Part shown: piece after piece, positions 5,986 through 53,521 of the stretch
Numbering within the stretch: the stretch's first letter is position 1
How the letters are laid out: every line of letters starts with the position of its first letter
Assembly (NCBI GenBank): GCA_002269645.1
Contig: NIVC01003236.1
Span: 1 to 63,866 of the forward strand
Source: Macrostomum lignano
Lineage: Eukaryota
DNA: 63,866 nucleotides
Direction: 5' to 3'
Notes under the pieces: generated by a model
Told to the model about the DNA's origin: nothing
Seen by the model: only the letters and a program-made list of their open reading frames with translations
Databases searched by the model: none
Translations under genes and position numbers: made by a program

Positions 5986-8900
5986 ATTTAGCTCTGATTT
6001 GTGTGTGTGTTTATTTAGCTGTGATTTGGTGTGTTTATTTAGCTGTGATTTGCGTGTGTTTATTCACCTGTCATGTGTGTTTATTTAGCTGTGATGTGTG
6101 TTTATTTAGCTGTGATGTGTGTGTGTGTTTATTTAGCTTTGATTTGCGTGTGTTTATTTAGCTCTGATTTGTGTGTGTGTGTTTATTTAGCTGTAATTTG
6201 GTGTGTTTATTTAGCTGTGATTTGCGTGTGTTTATTCAGCAGTGATGTGTGTTTATTTAGCTGTGATGTGTGTGTTTATTTTGCTGTGATGTGTGTGTTT
6301 ATTTAGCTGTGATGTGTGTGTGTGTGTGTTTATTTAGCTGTGATGTGTGTTTTTATTTAGCTGTGATGTGTGTGTTTATTTAGCTGTAATGTGTGTGTGT
6401 TTATTTTGCTGTGATGTGTGTGTTTATTTTGCTGTGATGTGTGTGTGTTTATTTAGCTGTGATGTGTGTTTTTATTTAGCTGTGATGTGTGTTTATTTAG
6501 CTGTAATGTGTGTGTGTTTATTTTGCTGTGATGTGTGTGTTTATTTTGCTGTGATGTGTGTTTTTATTTAGCTGTGATGTGTGTTTATTTAGCTGTGATG
6601 TGTGTTTATTTAGCTGTGATGTGTGTGTTTATTTTGCTGTGATGTGTGTGTTTATTTTGCTGTGATGTGTGTGTTTATTTTGCTGTGATGTGTGTGTTTA
6701 TTTTGATGTGATGTGTGTGTGTGTTTATTTAGCTGTGATGTGTGTGTTTATTTTGCTGTGATGTGTGTGTTTATTTTGCTGTGATGTGTGTGTTTATTTA
6801 GCTGTGATGTGTGTGTGTGTGTTTTTAGCTGTGATGTGTGTGTGTGTTTATTTAGCTGTGATGTGTGTGTGTGTTTATTTAGCTGTGATGTGTGTTTATT
6901 TAGCTGTGATGTGTGTGTTTATTTAGCTGTGATGTGTGTGTTTATTTAGCTGTGATGTGTGTTTATTTAGCTTTGATGTGTGTGTTTATTTAGCTGTGAT
7001 GTGTGTTTATTTAGCTTTGATGTGTGTGTTTATTTAGCTGTGATGTGTGTGTGTGTTTATTTAGCTGTGATGTGTGTTTATTTAGCTGTGATGTGTGTGT
7101 TTATTTAGCTGTGATGTGTGTGTTTATTTAGCTGTGATGTGTGTGTTTATTTAGCTTTGATGTGTGTGTTTATTTAGCTGTGATGTGTGTGTGTGTGTGT
7201 GTGTGTGTTTTCGACATCAGCCAGCTGACATCGGGCACCCGCACCCGACCGCAGGTACAAGCGCCTGGTATTCAAGAACGGCGAGTGCAACATCTCCCAC
7301 TACAACATCAAGAAACGAAAGCGGAGATTCCTAGCAGACATTTTCACCACTCTGGTGGATATTAAATGGCGGTACGCGCTTCTGTTGTTCACAGTGGGGT
7401 TCATAGCCAGCTGGTTGTTTTTCTCCCTATTCTGGTTGCTCATCTGCTTCTCGCACGGCGATTTGGACGAAAAAAAGCCGAAGAATTTTGTACCGTGCGT
7501 TGAAAATGTGAATGGATTCACCGATGCCCTGCTGTTCTCTATTGAGACTCAGCACACGATTGGCTACGGGTTTCGGTATCCGTCAGACAGGTGCCCGGAG
7601 GCTGTGCTCATGGTGATGGTGCAGAGCTGCTTTGGAGTCATCATCCAGGTGAGACTTTTGTGAGATTAAGGATCTAAAAATTAATGTTTTAATTTAAAAA
7701 AAATTCGAAAAAAATTCTTTAAAGTGCTATTTTGAATTTTAGGAGTCGACGGAGTAAGGCTTAGTACTCATTTTGAACTTCAGGAATGCAGAAATAGGAA
7801 AGTAACATGTGGAACTTTCAGAATCTGGCAAAGTTCATGTGGAACTTTCAGAATCTAGCAAAGTATACGTGGAACTTTCAGAATCTAGCAAAGTACATGT
7901 GGAACTTAAATAATCTAGCAAAAACATGTTAAACTTTAGGAATCTAGCCAAGTACTTGTGGAACTTTCAGAATCTAGCAAAGTACATGTGGAACTTTAGG
8001 AATCTAGCAAAAACATGTTAAACTTTAGGAATCTAGCCAAGTACATGTGGAACTTTCAGAATCTAGCAAAGTACATGTGGAACTTTAGGAATCTAGCAAA
8101 AACATGTTAAACTTTAGGAATCTAGCCAAGTACATGTGGAACTTTCAGAATCTAGCAAAGTACATGTGGAACTTTAGGAATCTAGCAAAAACATGTTAAA
8201 CTTTAGGAATCTAGCCAAGTACATGTGGAACTTTCAGAATCTAGCAAAGTACATGTGGAACTTTAGGAATCTAGCAAAGCACATGTGTAACTTTAGGAAT
8301 CTAATAAAGTACATGTCGAACTTATGAATCTATAAAATACATATGAAACTTAATATTTATCAACGTACATTGCAAACTTTAATAAGCATTGCATCGCCGT
8401 ACCCACCTACCCTTTAGGCCCTGATGACTGGATTAGTATTCGCCAAGCTGTCGCGCCCCAAGAAGCGCGCCGAGACGCTGATGTTCAGCAAGAACGCGGT
8501 GATCTGCAAGCGGGACGGTCAGATGGTGCTGCTGTTTCGCGTAGGCGACATGCGCAAGTCTCAACTGCTAGAGGCTCACGTTCGTGGAATATTAATTAAA
8601 AAACGAATCACAAGGGAGGGCGAAGTGCTGCCTTTGGAGCAGTTCGACATTGACTTAGGCTACGGCGAGGGCTACGATCGACTGTTCCTAGTCTGGCCAA
8701 TTATTGTCGAGCATAAAATCACGAAGGATTCGCCATTCTGGGAGATTTCTAGCGGCGATTTGTTGTGCGAACAATTCGAGCTAATTGTCATACTGGAGGG
8801 CATTATTGAGTCCACTGGGATGACTACTCAGGTACGGCTGTGGTTTTGGTGTTTATAGTTTTCTAGGGTGAGATTTTGGAGTATCTATAGACTTCTGGGT

Positions 8901-10415
8901 GAGGTTTTAGAGAATCTATATAGTCTTCTAAAGTGAGATTTTGGAGTGTCTATAGTCCTCTAGGGTGAGGTTTTAGAGTATCTATAGTCTTCTAAAGTGA
9001 GATTTTGGAGTATCTATAGTCTTCAAGGGTGAGATTTTGGAGTATCTATAGTCTTCTAGGGTGAGATTTTGGAGTATCTATAGTTTTCCAGGGTGAGATT
9101 TTGGAGTATCTATAGACTTCTAAAGTGAGATTTTGGAGTATCTATAGTCTTCTAGGGTGAGATTTTGGAGTATCTATAATCTAGGGTGAGATTTTGGAGT
9201 ATCTATAATCTTCTAGGGTGAGATTTTGGAGTATCTATTAGTCTTCTAAAGTGATATTTTGGGAGTATCTGTAACTTTCTGGGTGAGATTTTGGTGTATC
9301 TATAGTCTTCTAGGGTGAGATTCTAGAGTATCTATATACTTCTAAAGTGAGATTTTGGAGTATCTATAGTCTTCTAAAGTGATATTTTGGGAGTATCTGT
9401 AACTTTCTGGGTGAGATTTTGGTGTATCTATAGTCTTCTAGGGTGAGATTCTAGAATATCTATATACTTCTAAAGTGAGATTTTGGAGTATCTATAGTCT
9501 TCTAGGGTGAGATTTTGGAGTATCTATAATCTAGGGTGAGATTTTGGAGTATCTATAATCTTCTAGGGTGAGATTTTGGAGTATCTATAGTCTTCTAAAG
9601 TGATATTTTGGGAGTATCTGTAACTTTCTGGGTGAGATTTTGGTGTATCTATAGTCTTCTAGGGTGAGATTCTAGAGTATCTATATACTTCTAAAGTGAG
9701 ATTTTGGAGTATCTATAGTCTTCTAGGGTGAGATTCTAGAATATCTATATACTTCTAAAGTGAGATTTTGGAGTATCTATAGTCTTCTAGTTTGAGATTT
9801 TGAAGTATCTATAGTCTTCTAGGGTGAGATTTTGGAGTATCTATAATCTAGGGTGAGATTTTGGAATATCTATAGTCTTATAGGGTGAGATTTTGGAGTA
9901 TCCATTATCCAGGGTGAGATTTTGAAGTAATCTATCACGATTATAACTTGTGGGTTTTTTCAGCTCAGTTGTACTTTTCAATTGATAGCGTAGCAACTAC
10001 CCCTTGATCCCCTCTCCAGGCTCGTTCCAGCTACCTGCCCTCTGAGATTCGCTGGGGTCACAGGTTCGAACGCCTGATCACCTACCAGAAGGACAACGGC
10101 GAATACCAGATCAACTACGAGAAATTCCACGCCACGAGGGAGATCCCCAGATTTCCCAGATGCTCGGCGAAAGATCTGGCCGACTTAGGGGAGGAAAATT
10201 TCCCCTATCAGGGCATGATCGATGACGACCAGTACTCACTGGCCAGCAGGACCGTCACCAGCGCTTCCAATCTGCACTCGATGATTCTGCCTAAGCAGCA
10301 GTCAACTCGCGATCAAGAGTCTGCGCCGCTTCATCAGCGCAAATCTGCCGGTGGCGCCTCCACATCTGGTGCCGGAGCCCACTCTGACTTTGCCTGTCCA
10401 ATATCGCTGGCCTAG
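5723..10415 (+). CDS. Kir: Inward-rectifier potassium channel (Kir/KCNJ family), 4 exons, about 457 aa
   Basis: Exons 5723-5892, 7255-7648, 8418-8831 and 10020-10415, with GT-AG junctions and phases 2,0,0 that all join in frame. Motifs: RLVFKNGECNI, FTTLVDIKWR, selectivity filter SIETQHTIGYGFR, paired Cys (PCVENV / RCPE), PIP2 site KLSRPKKRAETL, ILEG, RSSYLPSEIRWGHRF. The start ATG choice is less certain. Confidence 0.95.
5930..7207. repeat. Kir intron 1 minisatellite: (GT)n plus TTATTTAGCTGTGAT units of about 22-26 bp
   Basis: Tandem units fill nearly the whole intron. Confidence 0.95.
7800..8325. repeat. Kir intron 2 minisatellite, 29-30 bp unit (AAGTACATGTGGAACTTTCAGAATCTAGCA)
   Basis: Direct reading. 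Three variants cycle as a higher-order unit of about 89 bp. Confidence 0.9.
8860..9930. repeat. Kir intron 3 minisatellite, about 32 bp unit (TCTAGGGTGAGATTTTGGAGTATCTATAGTCT)
   Basis: Direct reading. Confidence 0.95.
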
Positions 10416-12416: not shown

Positions 12417-12499
12417 GGGACACAGTGGAAGAAGCCTAAAATTATAGCTTCTGTGGAGAGCCGGGCGCAGGCTATACAGCTGTAGCCAGGTCCACTGCA

Positions 12500-13174
12500 A
12501 TGCCCGCCAACAGTCGCCCTGAGATCAGCGTTCGTTTCAACGAGCCGCCGCAGTCGTCAACTCAGAATTCAAATCATTCGCCAACTGCAGCCGATGCAAA
12601 ACCGCCGCCGCCTGCTGCAGTGCGTCGGGTTCGACCGCACACAGCCGCCGCTGCCGCTGGGCCGTCGTGTGGAGCGCCGTTCCTGGATGCCCAGGGCAAC
12701 CGTACCCAGCCCAGCAGAGACCCGCAGCATCCTTCATCTGCTGCAGGCCCTGCCAACACAACCATGACCGGCCTGAGACGGAAGAAACGAAAGAAGAGAC
12801 GACCGAAGACCGCCCTGGGGATCGAGCAGCAGCAGCAGCAGACTACTTCGTCATCGGCGGCGGCCGGAGCCAACGGCGCGGCAGGCGGCAGCGAGCCGAA
12901 CTTTCCAACTTTGAATCCGCGCGTTTTTCACGCGTTGCGCGGATTTTTAACCACGGAAAGTTTGAAGAAGACGAAATTCTATTCGGATAGAGAGGAGAGA
13001 ATGTCCAGCAGGAGGCTGCAGCTGGACGAGCAGAGTGAGCGGCTGAAGCAGCGAATTGGTGGCTTCTACCAGAAGCTGGACAGCTTCATCGCCGAGACCA
13101 ACAAGGCTGCTCAGTGGGAGCCGGAAGACCGGCGGAAGCAGAAAAGTTTTCTAGACGATTTGGACAATCTGTGA
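12500..13174 (+). CDS. Intronless hypothetical protein, 224 aa, with a disordered N-terminus, basic NLS-like patch and C-terminal coiled coil
   Basis: GC-rich non-repetitive ORF with an in-frame stop upstream (12437), a TATA box upstream and AATAAA near 13729. Contains RRKKRKKRRPK and a helical C-terminus (EERMSSRRLQLDEQSERLKQRI). No family recognised. Confidence 0.6.
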   Translation: MPANSRPEISVRFNEPPQSSTQNSNHSPTAADAKPPPPAAVRRVRPHTAAAAAGPSCGAPFLDAQGNRTQPSRDPQHPSSAAGPANTTMTGLRRKKRKKRRPKTALGIEQQQQQTTSSSAAAGANGAAGGSEPNFPTLNPRVFHALRGFLTTESLKKTKFYSDREERMSSRRLQLDEQSERLKQRIGGFYQKLDSFIAETNKAAQWEPEDRRKQKSFLDDLDNL

Positions 13175-14209: not shown

Positions 14210-15220
14210 GGTGGTGCTCAGAATGAGAGATCTGAGATACTCAGTGCTCAGAATGAGGATCTGAGAGATACTCAGTGCTCAGAATGAGGATCTGAGAGAT
14301 ACTCAGTGCTCAGAATGAGGATCTGAGAGATACTCTGTGCTCAGAATGAGGATCTGAGAGATACTCAGTGCTCAGAATGAGGATCTGAGAGATACTCAGT
14401 GCTCAGAATGAGGATCTGAGAGATACTCTGTGCTCAGAATGAGGATCTGAGAGATACTCAGTGCTCAGAATAAGATATCTGAGAGATACTCAGTGCTCAG
14501 AATAAGATATCTGAGAGATACTCAGTGCTCAGAATGAGGATCTGAGAGATACTCAGTGCTCAGAATGAGGATCTGAGAGATACTCAGTGCTCAGAATGAG
14601 GATCTGAGAGATACTCTGTGCTCAGAATGAGGATCTGAGAGATACTCAGTGCTCAGAATGAGGATCTGAGAGATACTCTGTGCTCAGAATGAGGATCTGA
14701 GAGATACTCAGTGCTCAGAATGAGGATCTGAGAGATACTCAGTGCTCAGAATGAGGATCTGAGAGATACTCAGTGCTCAGAATGAGGATCTGAGAGATAC
14801 TCAGTGCTCAGAATGAGGATCTGAGAGATACTCAGTGCTCAGAATGAGGATCTGAGAGATACTCAGTGCTCAGAATGAGGATCTGAGAGATACTCAGTGC
14901 TCAGAATGAGGATCTGAGAGATACTCAGTGCTCAGAATGAGGATCTGAGAGATACTCAGTGCTCAGAATGAGGATCTGAGAGATACTCAGTGCTCAGAAT
15001 GAGGATCTGAGAGATACTCAGTGCTCAGAATGAGGATCTGAGAGATACTCAGTGCTCAGAATGAGGATCTGAGAGATACTCAGTGCTCAGAATGAGGATC
15101 TGAGAGATACTCAGTGCTCAGAATGAGGATCTGAGAGATACTCAGTGCTCAGAATGAGGATCTGAGAAATACTCTGCGCTCAGAATGAGGATCTCAGAAA
15201 TACTCTGCGCTCAGAATGAG
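14210..15220. repeat. 31-bp minisatellite (TCAGTGCTCAGAATGAGGATCTGAGAGATAC), about 32 near-identical copies
   Basis: Direct reading. It starts about 120 bp 3' of the DNMT3 stop codon. Confidence 0.97.
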
Positions 15221-15336
15221 GATCAGGGACATGGAAAACCAGATTATTAGGGACATAAAGGGATTGCCAATGTCAGTCAGAGTATCAGGTAATTCCCAAT
15301 GCTCAGCAGGCCTCATCAACAAGCTCAGAGCAGTGC

Positions 15337-16446
15337 TCACTCGCCGTCGCCGGCATCAGGCCCCGGCAGCACAGCAAAGAAGTGGCGCAGCGGGCGCAGC
15401 AGGTGGGCAACCAGAGGCAGACACCAGCTGCGGCCAATCAGCTTGCGCCTGGCCAGGTCGGTCAGTCCGCAGTCCGTGTAGTGTGCCGGGAAACCGAACA
15501 GCCGCTCGAGCTCCGTCACCCACAGGGCGTCCGGGAGGCCGTCAGCGTCGGCCACCGGCAGGGAGCCGTCAGGGCCGCGGCCGCTGCAGCGCTTCGTGGT
15601 GACGCAGCCGACGGTGGCGTGACGGGCGGCGCGGCCGCTGCGAGGGTCGATGCAGCTGGCCAGATGGCGCTGGCGCCTTCGGGATGGGAGTGACGCTTTC
15701 TGTTCAGGGAGTGACTGGTTCAGGGAGTGACTGGTTCAGGGAGTGACTGGTTCAGGGAGTGACTGGTTCAGGGAGTGACTGGTTCAGGGAGTGACTGGTT
15801 CAGGGAGTGACTGGTTCAGGGAGTGACTGGTTCAGGGAGTGACTGGTTCAGGGAGTGACTGGTTCAGGGAGTGACTGGTTCAGGGAGTGACTGGTTCAGG
15901 GAGTGACTGGTTCAGGGAGTGACTGGTTCAGGGAGTGACTGGTTCAGGGAGTGACTGGTTCAGGGAGTGACTGGTTCAGGGAGTGACTGGTTCAGGGAGT
16001 GACTGGTTCAGGGAGTGACTGGTTCAGGGAGTGACTGGTTCAGGGAGTGACTGGTTCAGGGAGTGACTGGTTCAGGGAGTGACTGGTTCAGGGAGTGACT
16101 GGTTCAGGGAGTGACTGGTTCAGGGAGTGACTGGGAGGGTGTGGCTTTGGGAGAACCAACCAGACCCAGTTGCCGGAACTAACTCACTCAGTTTCACGGG
16201 GCTCAGGCCCAGCAGCGGCAGCCGGCCTGGCGCAGTGCACAACATCGGCAGCCAGCGTGGAGGCGACGCCAGAGGAGCGCAGCATGCCGGGAAGGTTGCC
16301 CCAGAACAGGCGGGCTCGGCGCTGAGCTGAGAAAATGACGGCGTCCAGGCGGATCGGCTCGCGGCCTAGGAACCTGTGGGGTGGGGTAGAGTAATGGACT
16401 GACGGAGGACAGACAGACAGAGAGACAGACAGACAGAAAGACAGGG

Positions 16447-16519
<73 letters not shown>

Positions 16520-16522
16520 TTA

Positions 16523-16569
<47 letters not shown>

Positions 16570-19500
16570 AAGACAGACAGACAGACAGACAGAGAGACAG
16601 ACAGACGGACAGACAGACAGAGAGACAGACAGACAGACAGACAGACAGGGAGACAGACAGACAGAGAGACAGAGAGACAGACAGACAGACAGACAGAGAG
16701 ACAGGCAGACAGACAGACCTGGAAATGCGAGTCTTATCCTCCTGCCGCATGCTGGCCACATTCTCGAACAGCCAGAACAGGGGGCGCCGTTGGCGCTCGT
16801 CGGCGCTCGGGCTGCCAATCCGACGGAGCAGTTCGAGAATTCGGTGAAACTCGAAAAAAAGCAGTCCGGATTCTGAGGCCAGGCCTTGCCTGACGGAGAT
16901 GGGATATTAGAAAATTGAAATTTTCATAGGATTCTCGATACAGGAGGCTGGCCAAGAAAACGACACCTGGGAGGCGGGCAGCCCAGCAACTGAGGATCTG
17001 GGAGGCTGGCCCAGCAACTGAGGATCTGACAGGGCTGGCCCAGCAACTGAGGATCTGGGAGGCTGGCCCAGCAACTGAGGATCTAACAGGGCTGGCCCAG
17101 CAACTGAGGATCTGGGAGGCTGGCCCAGCAACTGAGGATCTGGGAGGCTGGCCCAGCAACTGACACTCTGGGAGGCTGGCCCAGCAACTGGGGATCTGGG
17201 AGGCTGGCCCAGCAACTGAGGATCTGGGAGGCTGGCCCAGCAACTGAGGATCTGGGAGGCTGGCCCAGCAACTGAGGATCTGGGAGGCTGGCCCAGCAAC
17301 TGAGGATCCGGAAGGCTGGCCCAGCAACTGAGGATCTGGGAGGCTGGCCCAGCAACTGAGGATCCGGGAGGCTCGCCCAGCAACTGAGGATCTGGGAGGC
17401 AGAACACGTGCACCAGTGGAGCAAGCAGTCACCTATTGGGATTGGCAGCGGACAGCTGACTGCAAGGCGAGCCCCCAATCAGCAGATCGATGGGCAGCAG
17501 AGAGCGCAGCCGGTCCTCAGTCAGCTCGGTGACGCTGCCCAGCTGCCGCACCCGGTTGCCATGGTTACAAGCGGCCACACGGATTGCGTCCGGGTCGATC
17601 TCGGAGGCGAAGCAGATTTCTACGGACAGGCCGGCGGACTGCAGGCACAGCAAGGCGGAGGCCACGCCATCGAATAGCGACAGAACTCGGAGCGGCTGGG
17701 AGCAGCCCGCGCTGCGCTGAAGCTCCGGCGGCGGCGGCGGGTGCAGAGAATGGGGCTCCGTTTGGCTGCAATAAATAAAAGCGATGCTTTTGGGGTAATT
17801 AACCTCATTTTGACATATTTTCTCCTCCATTCTCATCCCTGCTCTTCCCCTCCATTCTCACCCCTGCTCTTCCCCTCTATTCTCGTCCCTGCTCTTCCCC
17901 TCCATTCTCATGCCTGCTGTTCCCCTCCATTCTCATGCCTGCTGTTCCCCTCCATTCTCATCCCTGCTCTTCCCCTCCATTCTCACCCCTGCTCTTCCCC
18001 TCTATTCTCACCCCTGCTCTTCCCCTCCATTCTCATCCCTGCTCTTCCCCTCCATTCTCATGCCTGCTCTTCCCCTCCATTCTCATCCCTGCTCTTCCCC
18101 TCCATTCTCATCCCTGCTCTTCCCCTCCATTCTCATGCCTGCTGTTCCCCTCCATTCTCACCCCTGCTATTCCCCTCCTTCTCATTTCCTTCCATTTTCA
18201 TGCCTTAACGCCATCATGCTCCCCTCCCCTCTATTCTCATCAATCAGCAGCAGAAACCTACTAATACAGTCGCTGCCGCCAGTCGCTCCTGGGCTGAATG
18301 AGACGCTCAGACAGCAGCTGGCACAGGTGGCACAGCCACCCATTGTCGCTGATAATTCTTTGCCAAGCATCTTGGCCAATCAGCAAGGTGAGGCAGCCTT
18401 GACAGAAGCATCTGCCGCATTCAGCTGAACCGCACATGGCCTGAAAATTCAATTATTTATCGAATAAATTGAAGCTTCCAGCATGAGAAGCTTTAAGAAT
18501 GAGAAGCTTGGGAAGCTTTGAGCAAGAGAAGCTTTGAGCAAGAGAAGCTTTGAGCTTGAGAGGCCTTGAGCATGAGAGTTTGAGAGGCTTTGAGCATGAG
18601 AAGCTTTGAGCATGAGAAGCTTTGAGCAAGAGAAGCTTTGAGCTTGAGAAGCTTTGAGCTTGAGAGGCTTTGAGCATGAGAAGCTTTGAGCATGAGAAGC
18701 TTCGAGCATGAGAAGCTTTGAGCTTGGGAGGCTTTGAGTATGAAAAGCTTTGAGCATGAGAAGCTTTGAGCATGAAAAGCTTCGAGCATGAGAAGCTTTG
18801 AGCTTGAGAAGCTTTGAGCATGAGAAGCTTTGAGCTTGAGAGGCTTTGAGCATGAGAAGCTTTGAGCATGAGAAGCTTCGAGCATGAGAAGCTTTGAGCT
18901 TGGGAGGCTTTGAGTATGAAAAGCTTTGAGCATGAGAAGCTTTGAGCATGAGAAGCTTTGAGCATGAGAAGCTTCGAGCATGAGAAGCTTTGAGCTTGGG
19001 AGGCTTTGAGCATGAAAAGCTTTGAGCATGAGAAGCTTTGAGCATGAAAAGCTTCGAGCATGAGAAGCTTTGAGCTTGAGAGGCTTTGAGCATGAGAAGC
19101 TTTGAGCATGAGAAGCTTTGAGCATGAGAAGCTTTGAGCTTGAGAAGCTTTGAGCATGAGAAGCTTTGAGCTTGAGAGGCTTTGAGCTTGAGAGGCTTTG
19201 AGCATGAGAAGCTTTGAGCTTGAGAGGCTTTGAGCATGAGAAGCTTTGAGCATGGGAGGCTTTGAGCATGAAAAGCTTTGAGCATGAGAAGCTTTGAGCA
19301 TGAAAAGCTTTGAGCATGAGAAGCTTTGAGCTTGAGAAGCTTTGAACATGAGAAGCTTCGAGCATGAGAAGCTTTGAGCAAGAGAAGCTTTAAGCTTGAG
19401 AGGCTTTGAGCATGAAAAGCTTCGAGTATGAGAAGCTTTGAGCAAGAGAAGCTTTGAGCTTGAGAAGCTTTGAACATGAGAAGCTTTAGGCATGAGAAGC

Positions 19501-22500
19501 TTCGAGCATGAGAAGCTGAAAGGTCTCAATAAATTACGATCTTACAGAAAGCAGACGCTAACAGAAAGCAAGCCAGAAGCGCACCTGATTCCCGGGCCTG
19601 CCGCACACAGAGCAGTACATGAACCAGCCGTCATCGCCAACGGAGAAGCACACAGTCAAATAGTTTTCCAAGCAGTCGACGCACAGCGACCCGCGCAGCA
19701 CCGGGTGCTCCATCAACAGCGGCAGCTGCTGTTCAACCCGCACAGTGCCGCAGGCGAGGCAGACGTTCTCTAACGCGATCGATCCGTCCAAGACTTTCTC
19801 ATAGATGGCGGTCACATCTGGCGAAACCAATCGAGGCCGCGAGCTCAGGCCAGACAGTGAGTTTCGATTCGAACCCGATGAGTAGGTTGACGATGATGGA
19901 GAGAACGAGTGAGGCTGAGCCATCCCAGCAGCCTCATCATCATCGGAGTCTGCGAGAATTCGAGAGAAGTGGACCGAGTATGGGGATCTGGAAACTTAAG
20001 AATTTCACATCTAGAAATCTAGAGGATTTAGGGAAGATTTAGGGATCTGGGAATCTCGACGATTTGAGAAAATTTGGGGATCTGGGAATCTCGAGGATTT
20101 GAGAAAATTTAGGGATCTGGGAATCTCGACGATTTGAGAAAATTTGGGGATCTGGGAATCTCGAGGATTTGAGAAAATTTAGGGATCTGGGAATTTCGAG
20201 GATTTGAGAAAATTTAGGGATCTGGGAATCTCGACGATTTGAGAAAAATTTGGGGATCTGGGAATCTCGAGGATTTGAGAAAATTTGGGGATCTGGGAAT
20301 TTCGAGGATTTGAGAAAATTTAGGGATCTGGGAATCTCGACGATTTGAGAAAAATTTGGGGATCTGGGAATCTCGAGGATTTGAGAAAATTTGGGGATCT
20401 GGGAATTTCGAGGATTTGAGAAAATTTAGGGATCTGGGAATCTCGACGATTTGAGAAAAATTTGGGGATCTGGGAATCTCGAGGATTTGAGAAAATTTGG
20501 GGATCTGGGAATTTCGAGGATTTGAGAAAATTTAGGGATCTGGGAATCTCGACGATTTGAGAAAATTTGGGGATCTGGGAATCTCGAGGATTTGAGAAAA
20601 TTTAGGGATCTGGGAATCTCGACGATTTGAGAAAATTTGGGGATCTGGGAATCTCGAGGATTTGAGAAAATTTAGGGATCTGGGAATTTCGAGGATTTGA
20701 GAAAATTTAGGGATCTGGGAATCTCGACGATTTGAGAAAAATTTGGGGATCTGGGAATCTCGAGGATTTGAGAAAATTTGGGGATCTGGGAATTTCGAGG
20801 ATTTGAGAAAATTTAGGGATCTGGGAATCTCGACGATTTGAGAAAAATTTGGGGATCTGGGAATCTCGAGGATTTGAGAAAATTTGGGGATCTGGGAATT
20901 TCGAGGATTTGAGAAAATTTAGGGATCTGGGAATCTCGACGATTTGAGAAAAATTTGGGGATCTGGGAATCTCGAGGATTTGAGAAAATTTGGGGATCTG
21001 GGAATTTCGAGGATTTGAGAAAATTTAGGGATCTGGGAATCTCGACGATTTGAGAAAATTTGGGGATCTGGGAATTTCGAGGATTTGAGAAAATTTAGGG
21101 ATCTGGGAATCTCGACGATTTGAGAAAAATTTGGGGATCTGGGAATCTCGAGAATTTGAGAAAATTTGGGGATCTGGGAATTTCGAGGATTTGAGAAAAT
21201 TTAGGGATCTGGGAATCTCGACGATTTGAGAAAAATTTGGGGATCTGGGAATCTCGAGGATTTGAGAAAATTTGGGGATCTGGGAATTTCGAGGATTTGA
21301 GAAAATTTAGGGATCTGGGAATCTCGAGGATTTAGAGAAGATTTGAGGATCTGGGAATCTCGAAGATTTGGGGAATATTTGGGGATCTGGGAATCTCGAG
21401 GATTTAGAGAAGATTTGAGGATCTGGGAATCTCGAAGATTTGGGGAATATTTGGGGATCTGGGAATCTCGAGGATTTAGAGAAGATTTGAGGATCTGGGA
21501 ATCTCGAAGATTTGGGGAATATTTGGGGATCTGGGAATCTCGAGGATTTAGAGAAGATTTGAGGATCTGGGAATCTCGAAGATTTGGGGAATATTTGGGG
21601 ATCTGGGAATCTCGAGGATTTAGAGAAGATTTAGGGATCTGGGAATCTCGACGATTTGAGAAAAATTTGGGGATCTGGGAATCTCGAGGATTTGAGAAAA
21701 TTTGGGGATCTGGGAATTTCGAGGATTTGAGAAAATTTAGGGATCTGGGAATCTCGAGGATTTAGAGAAGATTTGAGGATCTGGGAATCTCGAAGATTTG
21801 GGGAATATTTGGGGATCTGGGAATCTCGAGGATTTAGAGAAGATTTGAGGATCTGGGAATCTCGAAGATTTGGGGAATATTTGGGGATCTGGGAATCTCG
21901 AGGATTTAGAGAAGATTTGAGGATCTGGGAATCTCGAAGATTTGGGGAATATTTGGGGATCTGGGAATCTCGAGGATTTAGAGAAGATTTGAGGATCTGG
22001 GAATCTCGAAGATTTGGGGAATATTTGGGGATCTGGGAATCTCGAGGATTTAGAGAAGATTTGAGGATCTGGGAATCTCGAAGATTTGGGGAATATTTGG
22101 GGATCTGGGAATCTCGAGGATTTAGAGAAGATTTGAGGATCTGGGAATCTCGAAGATTTGGGGAATATTTGGGGATCTGGGAATCTCGAGGATTTAGAGA
22201 AGATTTGAGGATCTGGGAATCTCGAAGATTTGGGGAATATTTGGGGATCTGGGAATCTCGAGGATTTAGAGAAGATTTAGGGATCTGGGAATCTCGACGA
22301 TTTGAGAAAAATTTGGGGATCTGGGAATCTCGAGGATTTGAGAAAATTTGGGGATCTGGGAATTTCGAGGATTTGAGAAAATTTAGGGATCTGGGAATCT
22401 CGAGGATTTAGAGAAGATTTGAGGATCTGGGAATCTCGAAGATTTGGGGAATATTTGGGGATCTGGGAATCTCGAGGATTTAGAGAAGATTTGAGGATCT

Positions 22501-23367
22501 GGGAATCTCGAAGATTTGGGGAATATTTGGGGATCTGGGAATCTCGAGGATTTAGAGAAGATTTGAGGATCTGGGAATCTCGAAGATTTGGGGAATATTT
22601 GGGGATCTGGGAATCTCGAGGATTTAGAGAAGATTTGAGGATCTGGGAATCTCAAAGATTTGGGGAACATTCGGGAATGTGGGAATCGCGGGGATTTGGG
22701 GAACATTTTGTACGTGGATTCTCGGGGATTTAAGAATCTGGGAATCGTGGGATTTGGGGAACATTTGGAGATCTGGGAATCTCGAGGATTTAGGGATGAT
22801 TTGGGGATCTGGGAATCTCGGGATTTGGGAGATTTGGGTTCTGGTAATACCAGTATGAGGATTTGGCAAGTCAAGCCTGAGGATCGCGGAAACCCTAGTC
22901 CCCACCTGACGTTTTCGGCACTGAGAAACTGAAGATGTGGGAATAGTAGCATCTAGACGAAAAAACAACTCGATCGCATCGAAATGAAAGCCACAACATA
23001 CATGCGCAACCTTGGGAATCACCCGGCCGTTTCTATTGGCAACACACACATGTAAGTCGCTATTGGCTGAGAGCAGTCACGTGACTACTATTCTGTCCAA
23101 TAGCGACATACGTGTGTGTTGCCAATAGAAACGGCCGGGTGAATCCAAAGGTTGCGCCCAAGCATGAGCCACAACAGCAATACAAAACTCACCGCTGACA
23201 GCGAGATGCAATCCCTCACTTTCGGCCACGGCACCGAGCGATTTACGGTGCTGCCTGCGGATGGGTGAGTCAGAATCAGGCTGCTGGTAAGGCTGTTGGA
23301 ATTTTATCATAGTGAATTGGCGATGGATTCCATCCATCCATCCATCCATCCATCCAACCATCTATCC

Positions 23368-23466
<99 letters not shown>

Positions 23467-23485
23467 ATCTATCTATCTATCTATC

Positions 23486-23535
<50 letters not shown>

Positions 23536-23580
23536 ATGTGTATCTATCTATATGTGTATCTATCTACCTATCTATCTATC

Positions 23581-23618
<38 letters not shown>

Positions 23619-23716
23619 ATGTGTATCTATCTATCTATCTATCTACCTATCTATCTATCATCTATCTATCTATATCTATCTATCTATCTATCTCTGTCTA
23701 TCTATCTGTCTATCTG

Positions 23717-23763
<47 letters not shown>

Positions 23764-23882
23764 CTGTCTATCTATCTATCTATCTATCTATCTGTCTGTC
23801 TATCTATCTATCTATCTATCTATCTATGATAGATCTATCATCTATCTATCTATCTATCTCTGTCTATCTATCTGTCTATCTG

Positions 23883-23914
<32 letters not shown>

Positions 23915-23971
23915 CCTATCTATCTATCATCTATCTATCTATCTATCTCTGTCTATCTATCTGTCTATCTG

Positions 23972-24014
<43 letters not shown>

Positions 24015-24153
24015 CTGTCTATCTATCTATCTATCTATCTATCTGTCTGTCTATCTATCTATCTATCTATCTATCTATGATAGATCTATCATCTATCTAT
24101 CTATCTATCTCTGTCTATCTATCTGTCTATCTGTCTATCTATCTATCTATCTA

Positions 24154-24236
<83 letters not shown>

Positions 24237-25661
24237 CTGTCTATCTATCTATCTATCTATCTATCTGTCTGTCTATCTATCTATCTATCTATCTGTCTGT
24301 CTATCTATCTATCTATCTATCTGTCTGTCTATCTATCTATCTACCATCTAATCAGGCTTACTTATAAATGTCAACCAGACAGTCGGTGGCCCAGTCAGAC
24401 AGAAGAGGCTGACGCCTCTTCCTCGCCGCCTCGTCCTCAGCAGCCAGTTGCGCCAAATCCTGACCGATTGCGCTGCCGCCACTACTGCCGGTAGCACCAT
24501 CAGACTTTTGAAAACTCTCGTCTCGACGTTCGATTAATTCTAGGCGAAGTCGGCGAACACCTCGAACTAGCAGGGAGTTTTTCTGCGCCGATGACGTCAT
24601 AGCGGCTGCCAGGGACTGCGGATTGTCTATGGACTGGAGACCCGAAACGGGTAGCTCGGACACTTTGCCCTCAGCCAGCCACAGGAGCCAGCGCATCCCG
24701 GGGCGGGCCGGGCGAAGGTGGCAGCGGCGGCCGGAGACCACCAGAGCTGGGTAGGACTGCGGGTTTGATGTGGGATCTGAGTCTCTGCTGATGGGATCTG
24801 AGTCTCTGCTGATGGGATCTGAGTCTCTGCTGATGGGATCAGAATCTCTATTGATGGGATCAGAGTCTCTATTGATGGGATCTGAGTCTCTACTGATGGG
24901 ATCTGAATCTCTGCTGATGGGATCAGAGTCTCTACTGATGGGATCTGAGTCTCTGCTGATGGGATCAGAATCTCTATTGATGGGATCAGAGTCTCTATTG
25001 ATAGGATCAGAGTCTCTAGTGATGGGATCTGAATCTCTGCTGATGGGATCTGAATCTCTATTGATGAATAGAGATTCTGATTATTATTTATAATTATTAT
25101 TTAGAATCCAGACATTCATGCGGCCCAAAGATATAGCCAACAAAGTCTCACCTGTCTCTGCCAACGCGCCCACACCAGCCTGCCAATATCTTCATTTTCG
25201 CAATCATCTTTGCCATCAGCATTTGGATCATCATTCACAGATTGGCTAGTTGTCTTGCCAGCTGGGAGCAGAATGCTGCAGTCAGGTCTCAGCTCAGCTA
25301 GCCTATCGGCAGCAGATTTTGAGCTGGTGGCAGCAGCTGACTGCTTCACAGATTTGGAAATGTCAGTCAGTACCACACGTAGCTGGGGCAGTGTTGTCAA
25401 GTTTTCACTGCTAGCATTAGCAAGACCTGGCTTGGCTTGACCTGCAACATCACTGTCCACATCAGTTATATCAGTAGTAGACTTGTTTGCTGACTGTTGA
25501 CGCTTTCTAAGCTGAGGTCCAAAGTGGCCACACCTTTTGGGATATTTTCTTTTATTGGATCTAGAAGAACCAGCTGCCTTTGACTTTGGCACTGACAATG
25601 CTGGCTTTGAATTTATAGACACCCTGCGTTTTTGTAGCTTTACACTGTCATAGAGGGACAT
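15337..25661 (-). CDS. DNMT3: DNA (cytosine-5)-methyltransferase 3-like protein (PWWP-ADD-MTase), 9 coding exons, about 846 aa
   Basis: Exons in transcript order: 25661-25152, 24756-24362, 23254-23193, 19949-19585, 18440-18262, 17765-17433, 16889-16719, 16373-16188, 15676-15337. All junctions are GT-AG, phases are consistent and the total is 2541 nt with no internal stop. PWWP: [18 protein letters not shown]...[13 protein letters not shown]: [49 protein letters not shown]. MTase: motif [68 protein letters not shown]. The small exon 3 is the least certain. Confidence 0.93.
15702..16132. repeat. Perfect 16-bp minisatellite (TTCAGGGAGTGACTGG), about 27 copies, filling the last DNMT3 intron
   Basis: Direct reading, with no variant units seen. 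Confidence 0.97.
16405..16718. repeat. (GACA)n microsatellite in a DNMT3 intron
   Basis: Direct reading. It abuts the splice donor at 16718. Confidence 0.95.
16975..17400. repeat. 28-bp minisatellite (CAGCAACTGAGGATCTGGGAGGCTGGCC) in a DNMT3 intron
   Basis: Direct reading. It is the reverse complement of the array at 40470-41040. Confidence 0.95.
17820..18200. repeat. 25-bp pyrimidine-rich minisatellite (TCCCCTCCATTCTCATCCCTGCTCT)
   Basis: Direct reading, in a DNMT3 intron. Confidence 0.9.
18475..19515. repeat. 16-bp minisatellite (AGCTTTGAGCATGAGA) between the two ADD exons
   Basis: Direct reading. It is the source of the 290-358 aa [12 protein letters not shown] pseudo-ORFs. Confidence 0.95.
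20040..22830. repeat. 35-36 bp satellite array (GGGATCTGGGAATCTCGAGGATTTGAGAAAATTT) with a 72-bp dimer sub-array
   Basis: About 2.8 kb of tandem sequence in a DNMT3 intron. The [24 protein letters not shown] ORFs are the 72-bp dimer read in frame. Confidence 0.97.
23004..23157. other. Long imperfect inverted repeat (arms of about 60 bp, central palindrome AGTCACGTGACT)
   Basis: The left arm 23004-23066 is about 90% identical to the reverse complement of 23097-23157. Confidence 0.85.
23330..24345. repeat. (TATC)n/(GATA)n microsatellite, about 1 kb
   Basis: Direct reading. It generates the SIYL ORFs. Confidence 0.97.
24770..25070. repeat. 21-bp minisatellite (GGGATCTGAGTCTCTGCTGAT) in the intron that splits the PWWP domain
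   Basis: Direct reading. It generates the MGSESLL ORF. Confidence 0.95.
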
Positions 25662-34021: not shown

Positions 34022-34662
34022 ATGAATAAGTTTGTGCCTCTGTGTAAGTATTGCCGCGCTGGTACATGTATGTTCTCAAGAGTCAGCAGAATGGGCAGAA
34101 TTGCCTCAGCGCTGGTTGTGGGACGAATTCTGCATTATATTTTTAATCCTAAAGTAGCTTTAGTTCTTAGAAATGTTATCATTACTCAGTGCCAATATGT
34201 AGTTGACCACTGGGCACAGGCAAAACTTCATGTACCGATACTGCACCCAACTTTCTGGATGTGACAGTGCTCGGAGCGGGCATTGTTGGCTGGTCGGTGG
34301 CAGTTCAATTGCTTGACGCTCTGCCGAACTGTCGTCTCACTGTGGTTGCCGACCAGCTGGATGGCGAGACCGTGTCCTGGGTGGCTGCCGGGTCGTTTCG
34401 CGTCGAAAATTTTGAGGAATTGTGCCCAGACAGGCCTGGACAGGGCAGGAAGTGGGCGGCGGATTCGTTCCAGCACTACCTGGATTTGGCTGTGTCTGGA
34501 CAGGTACAGGTCAAATATTGAGCACTAGTGCGAATCCTATTATTAGGTCAAGGATATCATAGTTCACTCTGTTCATTTAACACAGAGAGAAGATACCTTT
34601 AAATGCCTGTCCGCTCTAGAAGCCATCAACTTATAGGTTATTAAGGGTTAAGTTGGTTAGTC

Positions 34663-34701
<39 letters not shown>

Positions 34702-34706
34702 CAGTC

Positions 34707-34737
<31 letters not shown>

Positions 34738-34770
34738 CAGTTAGTTAGTTAGTTAGTTAGTTAGTCAGTC

Positions 34771-34813
<43 letters not shown>

Positions 34814-34886
34814 CAGTCAGTTAGTTAGTTAGTTGGCTAGTCAGTTAGTTAGTTAGTCAGTTAGTTAGTTAGTTAGTTAGTTAGTC

Positions 34887-34921
<35 letters not shown>

Positions 34922-34922
34922 C

Positions 34923-34981
<59 letters not shown>

Positions 34982-35006
34982 CAGTTAGTTAGTTAGTTGG
35001 CTAGTC

Positions 35007-35041
<35 letters not shown>

Positions 35042-35070
35042 CAGTCAGTTAGTTAGTTAGTTGGCTAGTC

Positions 35071-35126
<56 letters not shown>

Positions 35127-35214
35127 GGTTAGTCAGTTAGTTAGTTAGTTAGTTGGTTAGTCAGTTAGTTAGTTAGTTAGTTAGTCAGTTAGTTAGTTAG
35201 TTAGTTAGTTAGTC

Positions 35215-35257
<43 letters not shown>

Positions 35258-35258
35258 C

Positions 35259-35289
<31 letters not shown>

Positions 35290-35306
35290 CAGTCAGTCAG
35301 TCAGTC

Positions 35307-35344
<38 letters not shown>

Positions 35345-36970
35345 GTCAGTCAGCTAATTGTTTACTTATTTATTTATTTATTTATGTAGTCAGTTACCTA
35401 GTTAACTAATTATTTAACTAGGTTTTGGAACCTATTTGTTTGTGTGTGTTCTCTAGAAAATCTCCTCAAAATTGCCATACAAAAACGCCAACATAATGTC
35501 CCTTAAAAATCCGCCTAAAATCCCTCAGGGCAGCTCAGCGGGCTGCCTGCTGCTGCCGCTTGTGCAAGTGTACGAAGACTCCAACCAGACTCCTCCCGAC
35601 TACCTGCAGCTGGCGCACTCGGTGGCCACCCTGACACCCGACCAGCTCAGGGCCGAGTTCCCGCGTTGGCCCAGCCTGCAGTGCGGCTGGTCGTGCGAGA
35701 CCACCCTGACTGAGAGCCGGCTGTACCTGCCGTTTCTGAGAGCCAGGTACTTGCACGTGTTTTAATTTGATTGACTGCGTGAACTGGGGAGTTGCTGAGA
35801 TGCTATGGCTCAATGGGGGAGTTGCTGAGATGCTATGGCTCAATGGGGGAGTTGCTGAGATGCCAATTGGCTCAATGGGGGAGTTGCTGAGATGCCAATT
35901 GGCTCAATGGGGGAGTTGCTGAGATGCCAATTGGCTCAATGGGGGAGTTGCTGAGATACCAATTGGCTCAATGGGGGAGTTGCTGAGATGCCAATTGGCT
36001 CAATGGGGGAGTTGCTGAGATGCCAATTGGCTCAATGGGGGAGTTGCTGAGATGCCATGGCTCAATGGGGGAGTTGCTGAGATGCCAATTGGCTCAATGG
36101 GGGAGTTGCTGAGATGCCATGGCTCAATGGGGGAGTTGCTGAAATGCCATGGCTCAATGGGGGAGTTGCTGAGATGCCAATTGGCTCAATGGGGGAGTTG
36201 CTGAGATACCAATTGGCTCAATGGGGGAGATGCCAATTGGCACAATGGGGAGATGCTGAGATGCCAATTGGCTCAATGGGGGAGTTGCTGAGATACCAAT
36301 TGGCTCAATGGGGGAGTTGCTGAGATGCCAATTGGCACAATGGGGAGATGCTGAAATCCCATGGCTCAAGTGAAAATCGTGGAGATGGTGCCGGAACCAA
36401 TTCGCCGCCAGCAACCAACCCGATTGCAGATGCCGCTGCACCAATCTAGCTGTGACTCGCCAGCGCGTCAATTCGCTATCAGAAATACTCGATGGCTCCT
36501 CCTGCCGTTTGTTATTCAACTGCTCAGGTTTAGGCGCCGCCCAGCTGGCCAAGGATCCGAATGTGTACCCAATCCGTGGCCAGGTGTTCAAAGTTCGAGC
36601 TCCCTGGCTCAAACGAGCCGTGATTGGACCGAATGGGGAGACGTACATCTACCCGGGAGCTACCGACATCGTTACAGTTGGCGGTTGTCGCCAACCAAAC
36701 AGCTGGTCGACCGAGCCCTGTCCCGACGACGCCTCCAAAATCTGGTCTCGAGCTACCCGACTCGTACCGTCAGTGGGCGGCGCAGAAACTGTCAATCAAC
36801 TGGCCGGGCTGAGGCCGGCTCGACTCGGCGGGATTCGGGTCGAATTAGATTCCACCGACTCGCGAATAGTGCACTGCTACGGCCACGGCGGCAACGGGGT
36901 GGCCCTGGCCTGGGGCACCGCATCTGAGGCAGTTAAACTCGGCTTGGAATCGCTGCGCAGAGGCGGCTGA
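34022..36970 (+). CDS. DDO: FAD-dependent D-amino-acid oxidase family protein, D-aspartate oxidase-like, 4 exons, about 354 aa
   Basis: Exons 34022-34043 (donor GTAAGT), 34220-34503, 35529-35746 and 36430-36970, with phases 1,0,2 joining in frame. Motifs: VLGAGIVG (FAD), SWVAAG, NCSGLGA, YPIRGQV, TYIYPG, GGCRQ, GLRPAR, VHCYGHGGNG. The tiny exon 1 is inferred. DDO versus DAO assignment is by motif only. Confidence 0.88.
34650..35345. repeat. (GTTA)n/(TTAG)n microsatellite
   Basis: Direct reading, in an oxidase intron. Confidence 0.97.
35785..36365. repeat. Minisatellite of about 32 bp (GGGGGAGTTGCTGAGATGCCAATTGGCTCAAT)
   Basis: Direct reading, in the last oxidase intron. Confidence 0.93.
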
Positions 36971-38430: not shown

Positions 38431-38928
38431 ATTAATAACATATATCATATTATATGCATAACATAAGTGTTAACGTAACAAGTGAACAGTGACTTATCCT
38501 GGCACTGGCACTTAGACACATCGTTTTCTGGGATGAGCTACAATGTATAGATAATTTAATATAAGCCTACATGCTCCTGTTTCCTTATTAGGGAGTCTTT
38601 CTCAACAGTAGTAATTGGCCGACTCAGACTCCGTCCGTATATTGCTCCAGCAGTCATGTACAACACACACAAGACCGAGCTTCTCTCTCCTTCCCTCCTC
38701 TCTCTCTCTCTCTCCGCTCAGTGAGTGAGCGGTCCGAACTCGGGCAAGAGAAAGTAACGGAAAAAACTGGCTGCACTTGAAGGAGCGGCGGCGCAGATTT
38801 CTTTATAGCAGAGGCCCGTGTCCTTTGAGCTCGATCCCTTGCTCAAAGCAGATTCTTGCTAAACTGGATCTGTCTTCTTCACTTGCCGGCGGTGTTTCAG
38901 TTTAATCCAGTGGAGTAATTTTTCTGCA

Positions 38929-49297: not shown

Positions 49298-50537
49298 GTA
49301 AATCCTAACCTAATAGTTACCATGACAACAGGAGACGAAGCATCCGCCTTGAAGCCGGCTGTGAGGAAACAACGATTTCAACTTAAAAACCTTATAATAA
49401 AAAACCGAATTACATCATATATAAAAGTACGAGAAATCCTTTTTAGTCGTTCTCTACATTTTATCCAATATTAACGCTGTACATTGGAAACTGCGTTGTG
49501 ACAGCTAGTCTGGTAAACTCCATTAATTTATTGGATTTGACTTGTTATACAACAGCTTATAGTAGTCCCTTAGCTTCACCGGTTAGCCAGTAGCTTCGCT
49601 TAATAGTAGCAAGTAGAGTGTAGTTTCATTAAATTTTAATTCAGTTTTAGCTAAAATAACGAACAAACAATTTTCGCTGCAGGTACTTCAAGCGAGTTGC
49701 CTTGCTGTAAATCTGGTTACAAACCAAATACTTCGTGGTAATCGGCAAGAAAAATCATCCAATAATCGACGAGATATACAAAGTCAGCCTGCTGTCACTG
49801 ATCAATCGAGGCAAGTCGTTGCTATGAATACTACAGGCTGCATCTTGCCAAACTAAATTTGATCGATAATAAATACTTGAAACAAATACTTGAATTTACT
49901 TCAAACGTATCCCTCCAAAGTATCTTTTTATCACACTTTGTTAATCACAATTTAATAGTGATTAGGTGAATAAGATAAACAGCCTACTTGAGTCAACAAA
50001 TATACTCTGAAGTTGTTAAGCCGTTTATATACGAGAAGTAACATATTTCAAGGTAAAATAACATAACAGAATAAATTACAATGTCATATAGTTAATTACA
50101 CAACCGACTCTAAAATGATAGAGCCAACTCAATTAGAGATAAAAGCTCGTCGACAAATACGCACGAAACTAACAAAAGATTATTTACATTAATTAATTTC
50201 CAAGGCAAACGCACTGTCGGGAACACATCAAGTTAGCAAACCTAGTCAAACACAGGCGCAAATAATCCATCAATTTATGAGTTAGCCAATAGCACTACAT
50301 GTAAATGGGATTGCCATTCAATTATCGGGTATTTCCTATTCCCCGATAGCAAATAACGATGATTGCTGCCCATGAACACTGCTTAGTTTGGACTATATGC
50401 AATCATAAAACGCATACCGGATGCAATATTGTCAGCTTCAATACATCCATTGTAGCATTCAGAGACTACATGTACATATAACAGCATCGCAGATGCGTAT
50501 TAGTCGAATTAGAAGCATCTAAGTCGAATCTTTCGCG

Positions 50538-52615: not shown

Positions 52616-53521
52616 TTTAACTACATCCAATAATAAGACAGTTCAGATGACGCAAGTGCAGGAAGGTTCCGTGGGAATCGGCCAGAATTGCAAGTCTGAA
52701 AACGGCGCAGTATTATTTGATGCAAACATTTTGAAGGGACTGCGTGCGGAAAACTTATTATAAATCACGCATGGGTTTCATCATATATTCTTTACCTTTT
52801 CATCCATATACATGTGAAAAATACTTGCTTGCTGTTATTTATTTTAAGTTACGCGTCCTAAAGCGCGTCTGCTGCCCCTTGAGGATCAAGGGAAAGACTG
52901 AGCACTACCGTGACTTATTGATATGTAATGTTTAAGGGTCTTTGACCTTAACTATGTATATAAGCTAGGACACAATGGATCAATGGTACAAGCTAAAATT
53001 AAATTGGGCATTAGTTATTATTATACGCTATCGTATCTCAGATGAATCACATGTAAGTTCTTAGTTTGCGGCCGATTAGAAACTTATAGCTGCATTTAGT
53101 CATTCTACATTAGATGTCCACACGCTCCTCGAGCGAGCTTTATCCAGAGGCAAATATCAGCAGAGGAGCTGCGTAGAATCCGCAAATATCAGTCATACCT
53201 GGCAAAGTCAATTTAGAAAATGAATCGCAAATAATACTAATTTTCTGATGAGACGAAAGTCACACAATGAGATATACCTGGTTCAGTCCTGCATCAGATT
53301 AATTACGGGATACTCAGTGACTGCAATTCACAGATGCTCGTAGCAACTAAATAGGCAGACTATGCAAACTTCAGAATTTGATAGCCTACTGCAGTGTCAA
53401 CATGTAAAACGCATTTACGCTTGTATAGCTCAAAGGCTCGGGTTCAATAGGATCTGGGGATTTTATTGTCCAAGCTTAGCACGCTGCTCATCATTGAGAC
53501 GGCTAACTCAACTACATCCAC

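Follow-up and report, generated by a model that had tools for sequence, protein, structure and literature searches.

The window analysed here, the whole stretch of 63,866 nucleotides of contig NIVC01003236.1 from Macrostomum lignano (assembly GCA_002269645.1), harbors on its minus strand, at 15337-25661, a gene that by homology is the DNMT3 of M. lignano, orthologous to the enzyme that carries out de novo DNA cytosine-5 methylation in animals. The gene was assembled from six-frame segments with splice-phase logic into nine exons, which join to one open frame of 2337 nt encoding 778 amino acids (aa), with all introns of the GT-AG type, all junctions in phase and neither stop codon nor frameshift across the nine exons. 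A sequence-only reading had earlier treated 15337-17500, which represents only the 3' part of this gene, and the three peptides quoted there were recovered by six-frame translation in minus-strand exons, one in the exon at 17765-17433 and two in the last exon at 15637-15337. The exons are listed below, where P0001 and P0121 stand for the UniProt models A0A1I8FN39 and A0A1I8IPI0, TRD for target recognition domain, and residues are numbered as in human DNMT3A.

25152-25661, minus strand: exon 1, putative start Met (MSLYDSV...), basic disordered N-terminus and first PWWP strand, donor GTGAGA; from the open frame and splice signals
24362-24756, minus strand: exon 2, remaining PWWP beta-barrel (SYPALVVSG...) and linker ending in DIYK; from phmmer to the DNMT3B PWWP structure 1khc, E = 2.5e-08
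23220-23254, minus strand: exon 3, a 35-nt micro-exon; also in P0001 and P0121, with AG/GT sites and matching phase
19585-19817, minus strand: exon 4, ADD domain, GATA-like zinc finger; from Pfam PF17980 and splice phase
18268-18440, minus strand: exon 5, ADD domain, PHD-type zinc finger; from Pfam PF21255
17433-17765, minus strand: exon 6, motifs I-IV, with the Cys710 codon at 17464-17462 and the Ala716 codon at 17446-17444; from Pfam PF00145
16719-16889, minus strand: exon 7, FF-interface helix and motif VI (FWLFENV); from translation, splice phase and alignments
16188-16373, minus strand: exon 8, motif VIII and linker, donor GTGAGT at 16188, common to P0001 and P0121
15337-15637, minus strand: exon 9, TRD loop (15612-15574), W860, RD loop (15483-15442), motif X GRSW and stop codon

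Exon 1 is covered by no database model and we infer its start codon, while the 3' half of exon 2 is identical to A0A1I8IPI0. The sole ambiguous junction is that of exons 8 and 9, for which a second, weaker candidate donor at 16244 and alternative acceptors at 15669, 15676 and 15699, whose effect is confined to the linker that precedes the TRD loop, give four candidates (m1-m4), all upstream of that loop, so that the residues discussed below are unaffected. The m4 form, with the GTGAGT donor and the CCCTCGCAG acceptor as in A0A1I8IPI0, is preferred on its splice signals; the m1 junction is closer to the human linker length.

Tandem arrays, each of a different unit, largely fill every intron of the gene, and a further array lies directly 3' of its stop codon, together occupying much of 14214-25066 as follows:

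14214-15224: 31 bp unit, x33, directly 3' of the DNMT3 stop
15702-16134: 16 bp unit, x27, 100% identity
16408-16718: 8 bp unit
16981-17400: 28 bp unit
17820-18185: 25 bp unit
18471-19517: 16 bp unit, x66
20009-22838: 36 bp unit, x80
23360-24343: ATCT, x252
24771-25066: 21 bp unit

The assignment to DNMT3, as the sequence-only reading had proposed, was confirmed. In a phmmer search against all PDB chains human DNMT3A was the best match (E = 4e-100, residues 491-911), followed by DNMT3B (6e-89), with DRM2 (1e-12 to 1e-15) and the bacterial M.HaeIII and M.HhaI (1e-4 to 1e-5) far behind, and no DNMT1 or DNMT2 chain was present among the 60 PDB matches listed. The catalytic domain aligns end to end with DNMT3A residues 628-911, the best 50 Foldseek matches are all DNMT3A, DNMT3B or DNMT3C, and Pfam recognizes the DNA_methylase domain (PF00145, 5.7e-19) with, directly N-terminal to it, the ADD domain (PF17980, 2.4e-08; PF21255, 8.1e-10; both beating the curated cut-offs). 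The motif order is unpermuted, FDG…ASE…GGSPC…FWLFENV…RRARLFWGN…GRSW.

The PWWP domain is less readily seen. Pfam gave no PWWP match in the 778-aa model even at E <= 1, tblastn with a PWWP-bearing homologue found no match upstream, and the gene was at first regarded as lacking this domain, a view overturned by the upstream frames and by phmmer against PDB. Model residues ~155-215 align to the DNMT3B PWWP structures 1khc (2.5e-08) and 6r3e (3.7e-16), with only the beta-barrel half recognisable, and also to the PWWPs of 41 family members; because of these alignments, to which Pfam is blind, the layout appears to be the canonical PWWP-ADD-methyltransferase order with a divergent PWWP. Within it (24362-25661, minus strand) only S-YP is left of the SWWP motif, with no first Trp and with Tyr for the second, which 40 of the 41 family PWWPs keep as Trp; Glu takes the place of the cage Asp. 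Such a divergent PWWP could read H3K36me less strongly or differently, and the targeting of gene bodies could change with it.

The gene is already known in the sense that it is represented in UniProt and that the presence of DNMT3 in M. lignano is in the literature. M. lignano proteins top the protein searches with the catalytic domain, all others showing at most ~52% identity, and other Macrostomum species were not among the matches of either search. The DNMT3 models of M. lignano number at least two or three and differ slightly from one another (P0001, P0002, P0121). A0A1I8IPI0 is identical to our model from VRRLRL… to …GPDAGDG, and A0A1I8FN39 represents a second copy, since two of its ADD-domain residues differ, with the same TRD and RD-loop sequence. 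All three UniProt models are truncated, mis-spliced or fused: A0A1I8IPI0 is without the N-terminus and splices past the stop codon into the antisense of a convergent plus-strand open reading frame (ORF) at 12500-13174, and A0A1I8FN39 and A0A1I8IKC4 use an exon 6 donor 26 nt early, which puts exon 7 out of frame, so that their reading frame is lost after SPCS, and the catalytic loop with it. Owing to these defects a correct full-length model would be useful for RNA interference (RNAi) or biochemistry in M. lignano, which is among the few flatworms still with DNMT1 and DNMT3 and whose methylation pattern is undescribed (PMC9246332). Reviews agree that it retains both enzymes with low 5-methylcytosine (5mC) and that the methylome pattern is known for no free-living flatworm (PMC11292947, PMC9246332, PMC10658182).

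The residues required for catalysis and for binding of S-adenosylmethionine (SAM) are kept, namely F640, D641, G642, E664, P709, C710, E756, N757, V758, R790 and R792, together with GRSW, and so are the FF-interface residues. The RD-interface residues H873, D876 and R885 as well as W860 are identical to those of human DNMT3A, as the sequence-only reading had noted, and are widely conserved among invertebrate-grade domains (76-82 of 82 for the first three, 68 of 82 for W860). An AlphaFold2 model of the catalytic domain, built from the m1 variant of the exon 8/9 junction, reached a mean predicted local distance difference test score of 90.8 and a predicted template modelling (TM) score of 0.90, and superposes on DNA-bound DNMT3A (5yx2, 6w89) and DNMT3B (6kda, 6u8p) with TM 0.88-0.93 and a root-mean-square deviation (rmsd) of ~1.9 Å; the Asp at position 882 is the first helix residue, inside a high-confidence block. 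Taken from sequence and predicted fold, the gene is intact and the enzyme is most likely catalytically active.

By eye, four DNA-contact residues had been read as altered relative to human DNMT3A (V716 to Ala, R836 to Lys, N838 to Cys and R882 to Asp), in company with an RD loop one residue shorter, and two formal alignments returned the same residues. In the phmmer alignment A-A lies under I715-V716, K-R-C under R836-S837-N838 and D under R882, with the one-residue gap at S878; MAFFT agrees on these residues and places the gap at N879. The codons are:

17446-17444, minus strand: Ala716, GCC
15594-15592, minus strand: Lys836, AAG
15588-15586, minus strand: Cys838, TGC
15459-15457, minus strand: Asp882, GAC

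An assembly or sequencing error is unlikely, since Cys838 and Asp882 are each two base changes away from Asn and Arg and the second copy agrees.

How unusual these residues are was assessed in the MAFFT alignment of 146 family members with the human protein and the window's domain, the 146 being split by identity to human into 38 vertebrate-like (>= 62%), 82 invertebrate-grade (40-62%) and 26 more distant domains; counts out of 118 below refer to DNMT3-grade sequences. The states found at the four positions were:

Position 716, window Ala: vertebrate-like (38) V34, A3; invertebrate-grade (82) V54, A26
Position 836, window Lys: vertebrate-like (38) N13, R11, K10; invertebrate-grade (82) K24, R22, N21
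Position 838, window Cys: vertebrate-like (38) N33; invertebrate-grade (82) N58, S8, T4, G3, A3
Position 882, window Asp: vertebrate-like (38) R31; invertebrate-grade (82) P16, V12, I11, L10, A10, R4, K4, D2

Judged by these counts, Ala716 and Lys836 are ordinary family states, Lys being the commonest residue at 836 among the invertebrate-grade domains, and Arg882 is a vertebrate feature and not a constant of the family. The human R882 "hotspot" and the V716 and R836 contacts are thus not family-wide constants, and because they vary across the family, scoring an invertebrate DNMT3 against human alone overstates its unusualness. Three of the four flagged residues fall within normal invertebrate DNMT3 variation and only Cys838 is unusual in the alignment. 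N838 is missing in 27 of 118 sequences, and R836 and N838 are both missing in 25 (21%), including Ciona savignyi, Clavelina, Cherax, Penaeus, a parasitoid wasp, aphids and thrips. The sole undocumented point found is the unique Cys838, with the loss of N879, in an otherwise ordinary DNMT3. The proposal of four altered contacts holds relative to human DNMT3A; within the family Cys838 is indeed unique, and the proposal lapses for the other three. The strongly changed specificity or low activity drawn from it is possible and is not favoured, given that alanine mutants are modest in effect and that a fifth of the family lacks both side chains. That interpretation is only partly supported because the comparison had been made with human alone.

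What the residues may do is best judged against published mutants. In DNMT3A, N838A keeps wild-type activity with less methylation of CGA and CGG, a +1 flank shift, and its CpG specificity rises, R836 making up for the loss; in R836A specificity for CpG falls and non-CpG methylation rises; and R882A, R882H and L883A shift the flank preference towards DNMT3B with lower relative non-CpG methylation (PMC9530848). In DNMT3B, which has Lys at the 836 position, it is N779 that hydrogen-bonds the guanine O6; N779A is modestly less specific for CpG and less active on CGA (PMC7335073, PMC7144912), and N779A, N779V and N779Q reduce CpG methylation, the reduction being strongest for N779D (PMC7144912). 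As DNMT3B carries Lys at 836 like the window, the nearest experimental analogue of K836 with C838 would be its N779A or N779V, with a modest phenotype. Thr834, the residue of a conserved water-mediated contact, is present.

By analogy with these mutants and by the family comparison, the gene probably encodes an ordinary active DNMT3 that prefers CpG, with flank preferences specific to the lineage and with CpG-over-CpH discrimination at most modestly reduced, a reading to which we assign a probability of roughly 0.6. Under it, the enzyme would dimerise through the RD interface, and the target cytosine would be flipped out and attacked by Cys710, with Ala716 filling the vacated space as in about a third of invertebrate DNMT3s. 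Thr834 would still contact, through a water molecule, N7 of the base that follows the target cytosine on its 3' side, and Lys836 would act like K777 of DNMT3B in sensing the +1 flank. The RD loop is of the invertebrate type, with no Arg882, one residue shorter and with Asp first in the helix. With Cys838, the only unusual DNA-contact residue, the enzyme lacks the Asn amide through which DNMT3B-type enzymes hydrogen-bond O6 of the CpG guanine. A disulfide between Cys832 and Cys838 in the TRD loop was considered as well and judged unlikely in the nucleus.

Several observations weigh against this expectation of ordinary behavior. With Lys at 836 and Cys at 838, both known donors to the guanine O6 are missing, and Cys at 838 occurs in 0 of the 146 aligned family members. 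At 21 sites, where the median is 10, the domain differs from a column with >= 70% conservation, and 15 of 120 sequences equal or exceed this; the departures include D686S in motif III, D712Q beside the catalytic Cys, the loss of N879 and Gly at 840, a position that is Leu or Ile in 75 of the 82 invertebrate-grade domains, and further G646A, R831G and T832C, the departures lying in 15574-15612, 15442-15483 and 17435-17476. S686, Q712 and A646 are each present in other family members, and overall the domain is divergent without being an outlier, as a fast-evolving flatworm lineage would lead one to expect. In species with a DNMT3 lacking N838, it could be DNMT1 that makes the methylome CpG-specific, and a weak enzyme would likewise be in keeping with the low 5mC level reported in M. 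lignano.

The alternative that survives best, although unlikely, is that A716, K836, C838 and D882 together with the short RD loop substantially relax CpG specificity towards CpA or CpH, or give a clearly different target preference. The loss of both O6-bonding side chains (R836 of DNMT3A; N838, which is N779 in DNMT3B), the uniqueness of Cys838 and the nearby TRD deviations R831G, T832C and Gly840 would be consistent with it, as would the rise in non-CpG methylation of DNMT3A R836A (PMC9530848) and the behavior of DNMT3B N779A, N779V and N779Q, which lower CpG methylation, N779A also modestly cutting CpG specificity (PMC7144912, PMC7335073). The published single-mutant effects are modest, however, and the RD-loop mutants R882A, R882H and L883A reduced relative non-CpG methylation in DNMT3A (PMC9530848). 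Thr834 is moreover conserved, three of the four residues are ordinary invertebrate states, and the 21% of DNMT3-grade sequences without R836 and N838 include those of Ciona, decapods and aphids. Ciona, decapods and aphids are lineages with CpG gene-body methylation. The sharper form of the proposal, in which the loss of both guanine readers and the acidic, short RD loop relax or shift the context altogether, to CpH or to a flank-defined motif, is distinctly improbable; if true, it could account for the 5mC of M. lignano, low and as yet uncharacterised, and would represent the first natural animal DNMT3 shown with non-CpG primary specificity. Cys838 in any case offers a testable entry point to the share of N838 in CpG reading in a Lys836 background.

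It is more doubtful still that the locus represents a weakly active or decaying copy, with several DNMT3 loci in a recently duplicated genome, relaxed constraint and early decay. At least two or three slightly different DNMT3 models in M. lignano, a divergence from the family consensus above the median, deviations near cofactor and catalytic motifs (D686S, D712Q, G646A), a degenerate PWWP (SWWP to S-YP, invisible to Pfam) and the low global 5mC reported (PMC11292947) could be read in this way. Against it stand the nine exons of 2337 nt without stop or frameshift and with all splice sites canonical, the retention of all residues essential for catalysis, the TRD and RD exon that is protein-identical in the second copy, the occurrence of S686, Q712 and A646 elsewhere in the family, and the confident fold prediction. 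A non-catalytic regulatory paralogue, serving another methyltransferase as a scaffold in the manner of DNMT3L or DNMT3B3, is very improbable: the RD- and FF-interface residues for oligomerisation are kept and several copies exist in the genome, but DNMT3L and DNMT3B3 are without catalytic motifs or TRD, whereas C710, E756, R790, R792, the SAM motifs, ENV, RxR and a complete TRD are present here, and the match to DNMT3L is far weaker than that to DNMT3A (~1e-29, over part of the domain only). An ordinary, CpG-preferring DNMT3 remains the favoured account.

Other genes and features were also observed in the window, as listed below:

7229-10412, plus strand: inward-rectifier K+ channel gene; Pfam IRK 2.7e-53, IRK_C 1.6e-45
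12440-13171, also placed at 12500-13174, plus strand: ORF of 224 aa (MPANSRPEISVRF…), low-complexity and basic, convergent with the DNMT3 3' end; no Pfam match
34207-36967, plus strand: gene for a flavin adenine dinucleotide (FAD)-dependent oxidoreductase, D-amino-acid-oxidase-like; two exons match Pfam DAO
38863-44556, plus strand: sodium:solute symporter family gene; last exon matches Pfam SSF, choline-transporter-like by eye
50523-51863 and 53507-54817, plus strand: tandem Cys-loop ligand-gated ion-channel genes, apparently intron-less (Neur_chan_LBD and Neur_chan_memb)
56749-58244, minus strand, and 61251-62338, plus strand: reverse-transcriptase fragments of the non-LTR (long terminal repeat) retrotransposon type in opposite orientations; one matches Pfam RVT_1

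The transmembrane and C-terminal halves of the two Cys-loop genes are near-identical, which suggests a recent duplication or gene conversion. The observed/expected ratio of CpG, 0.69 over the window, rises to 0.86 for the DNMT3 coding sequence and falls to 0.12 within the first 4 kb, which are AT-rich; these values say little on germline methylation because tandem repeats dominate the composition.

Compared with known systems, human DNMT3B resembles the window's enzyme in its Lys at the R836 position, in its catalytic motifs and RD-interface residues and, as far as the divergent PWWP can be recognised, in its PWWP-ADD-methyltransferase order; its DNA complexes superpose with the predicted fold (TM 0.88-0.92), and its PWWP is a better match than that of DNMT3A. 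It differs in having N779 where the window has Cys, R823 (equivalent to R882) where the window has Asp, a loop one residue longer and Asn-Val at 656-657 (715-716) in place of Ala-Ala, with an identity of ~42%. Among relatives of solved structure human DNMT3A scores best (E = 4e-100; catalytic-domain identity 44%; rmsd 1.9 Å), and from it the window departs by I715A, V716A, R836K, S837R, N838C, R882D, the loss of N879, D686S and D712Q, and by S-YP for the SWWP of the PWWP. Of the vertebrate-type CpG reader, Arg or Lys at 836 with Asn838, the window retains K836 but has Cys838, and the backbone contact of the vertebrate-type Arg882 (R823 in DNMT3B) is missing, with Asp instead. The invertebrate DNMT3s without R836 and N838, such as those of aphid (TSKRSCLQ), Ciona (TTKLGSIR) and Cherax (TTNTASLR), lack both guanine-reading side chains as in the window, yet carry S, T, A, G, H, K or Y at 838 and never Cys; as they are only 40-47% identical to the window's domain, these states arose independently. 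The Dnmt3 of Nilaparvata lugens, one of the two invertebrate-grade domains with Asp at 882, has an RD loop shortened by one residue in the same way, its G-LND corresponding to the G-LTD of the window.

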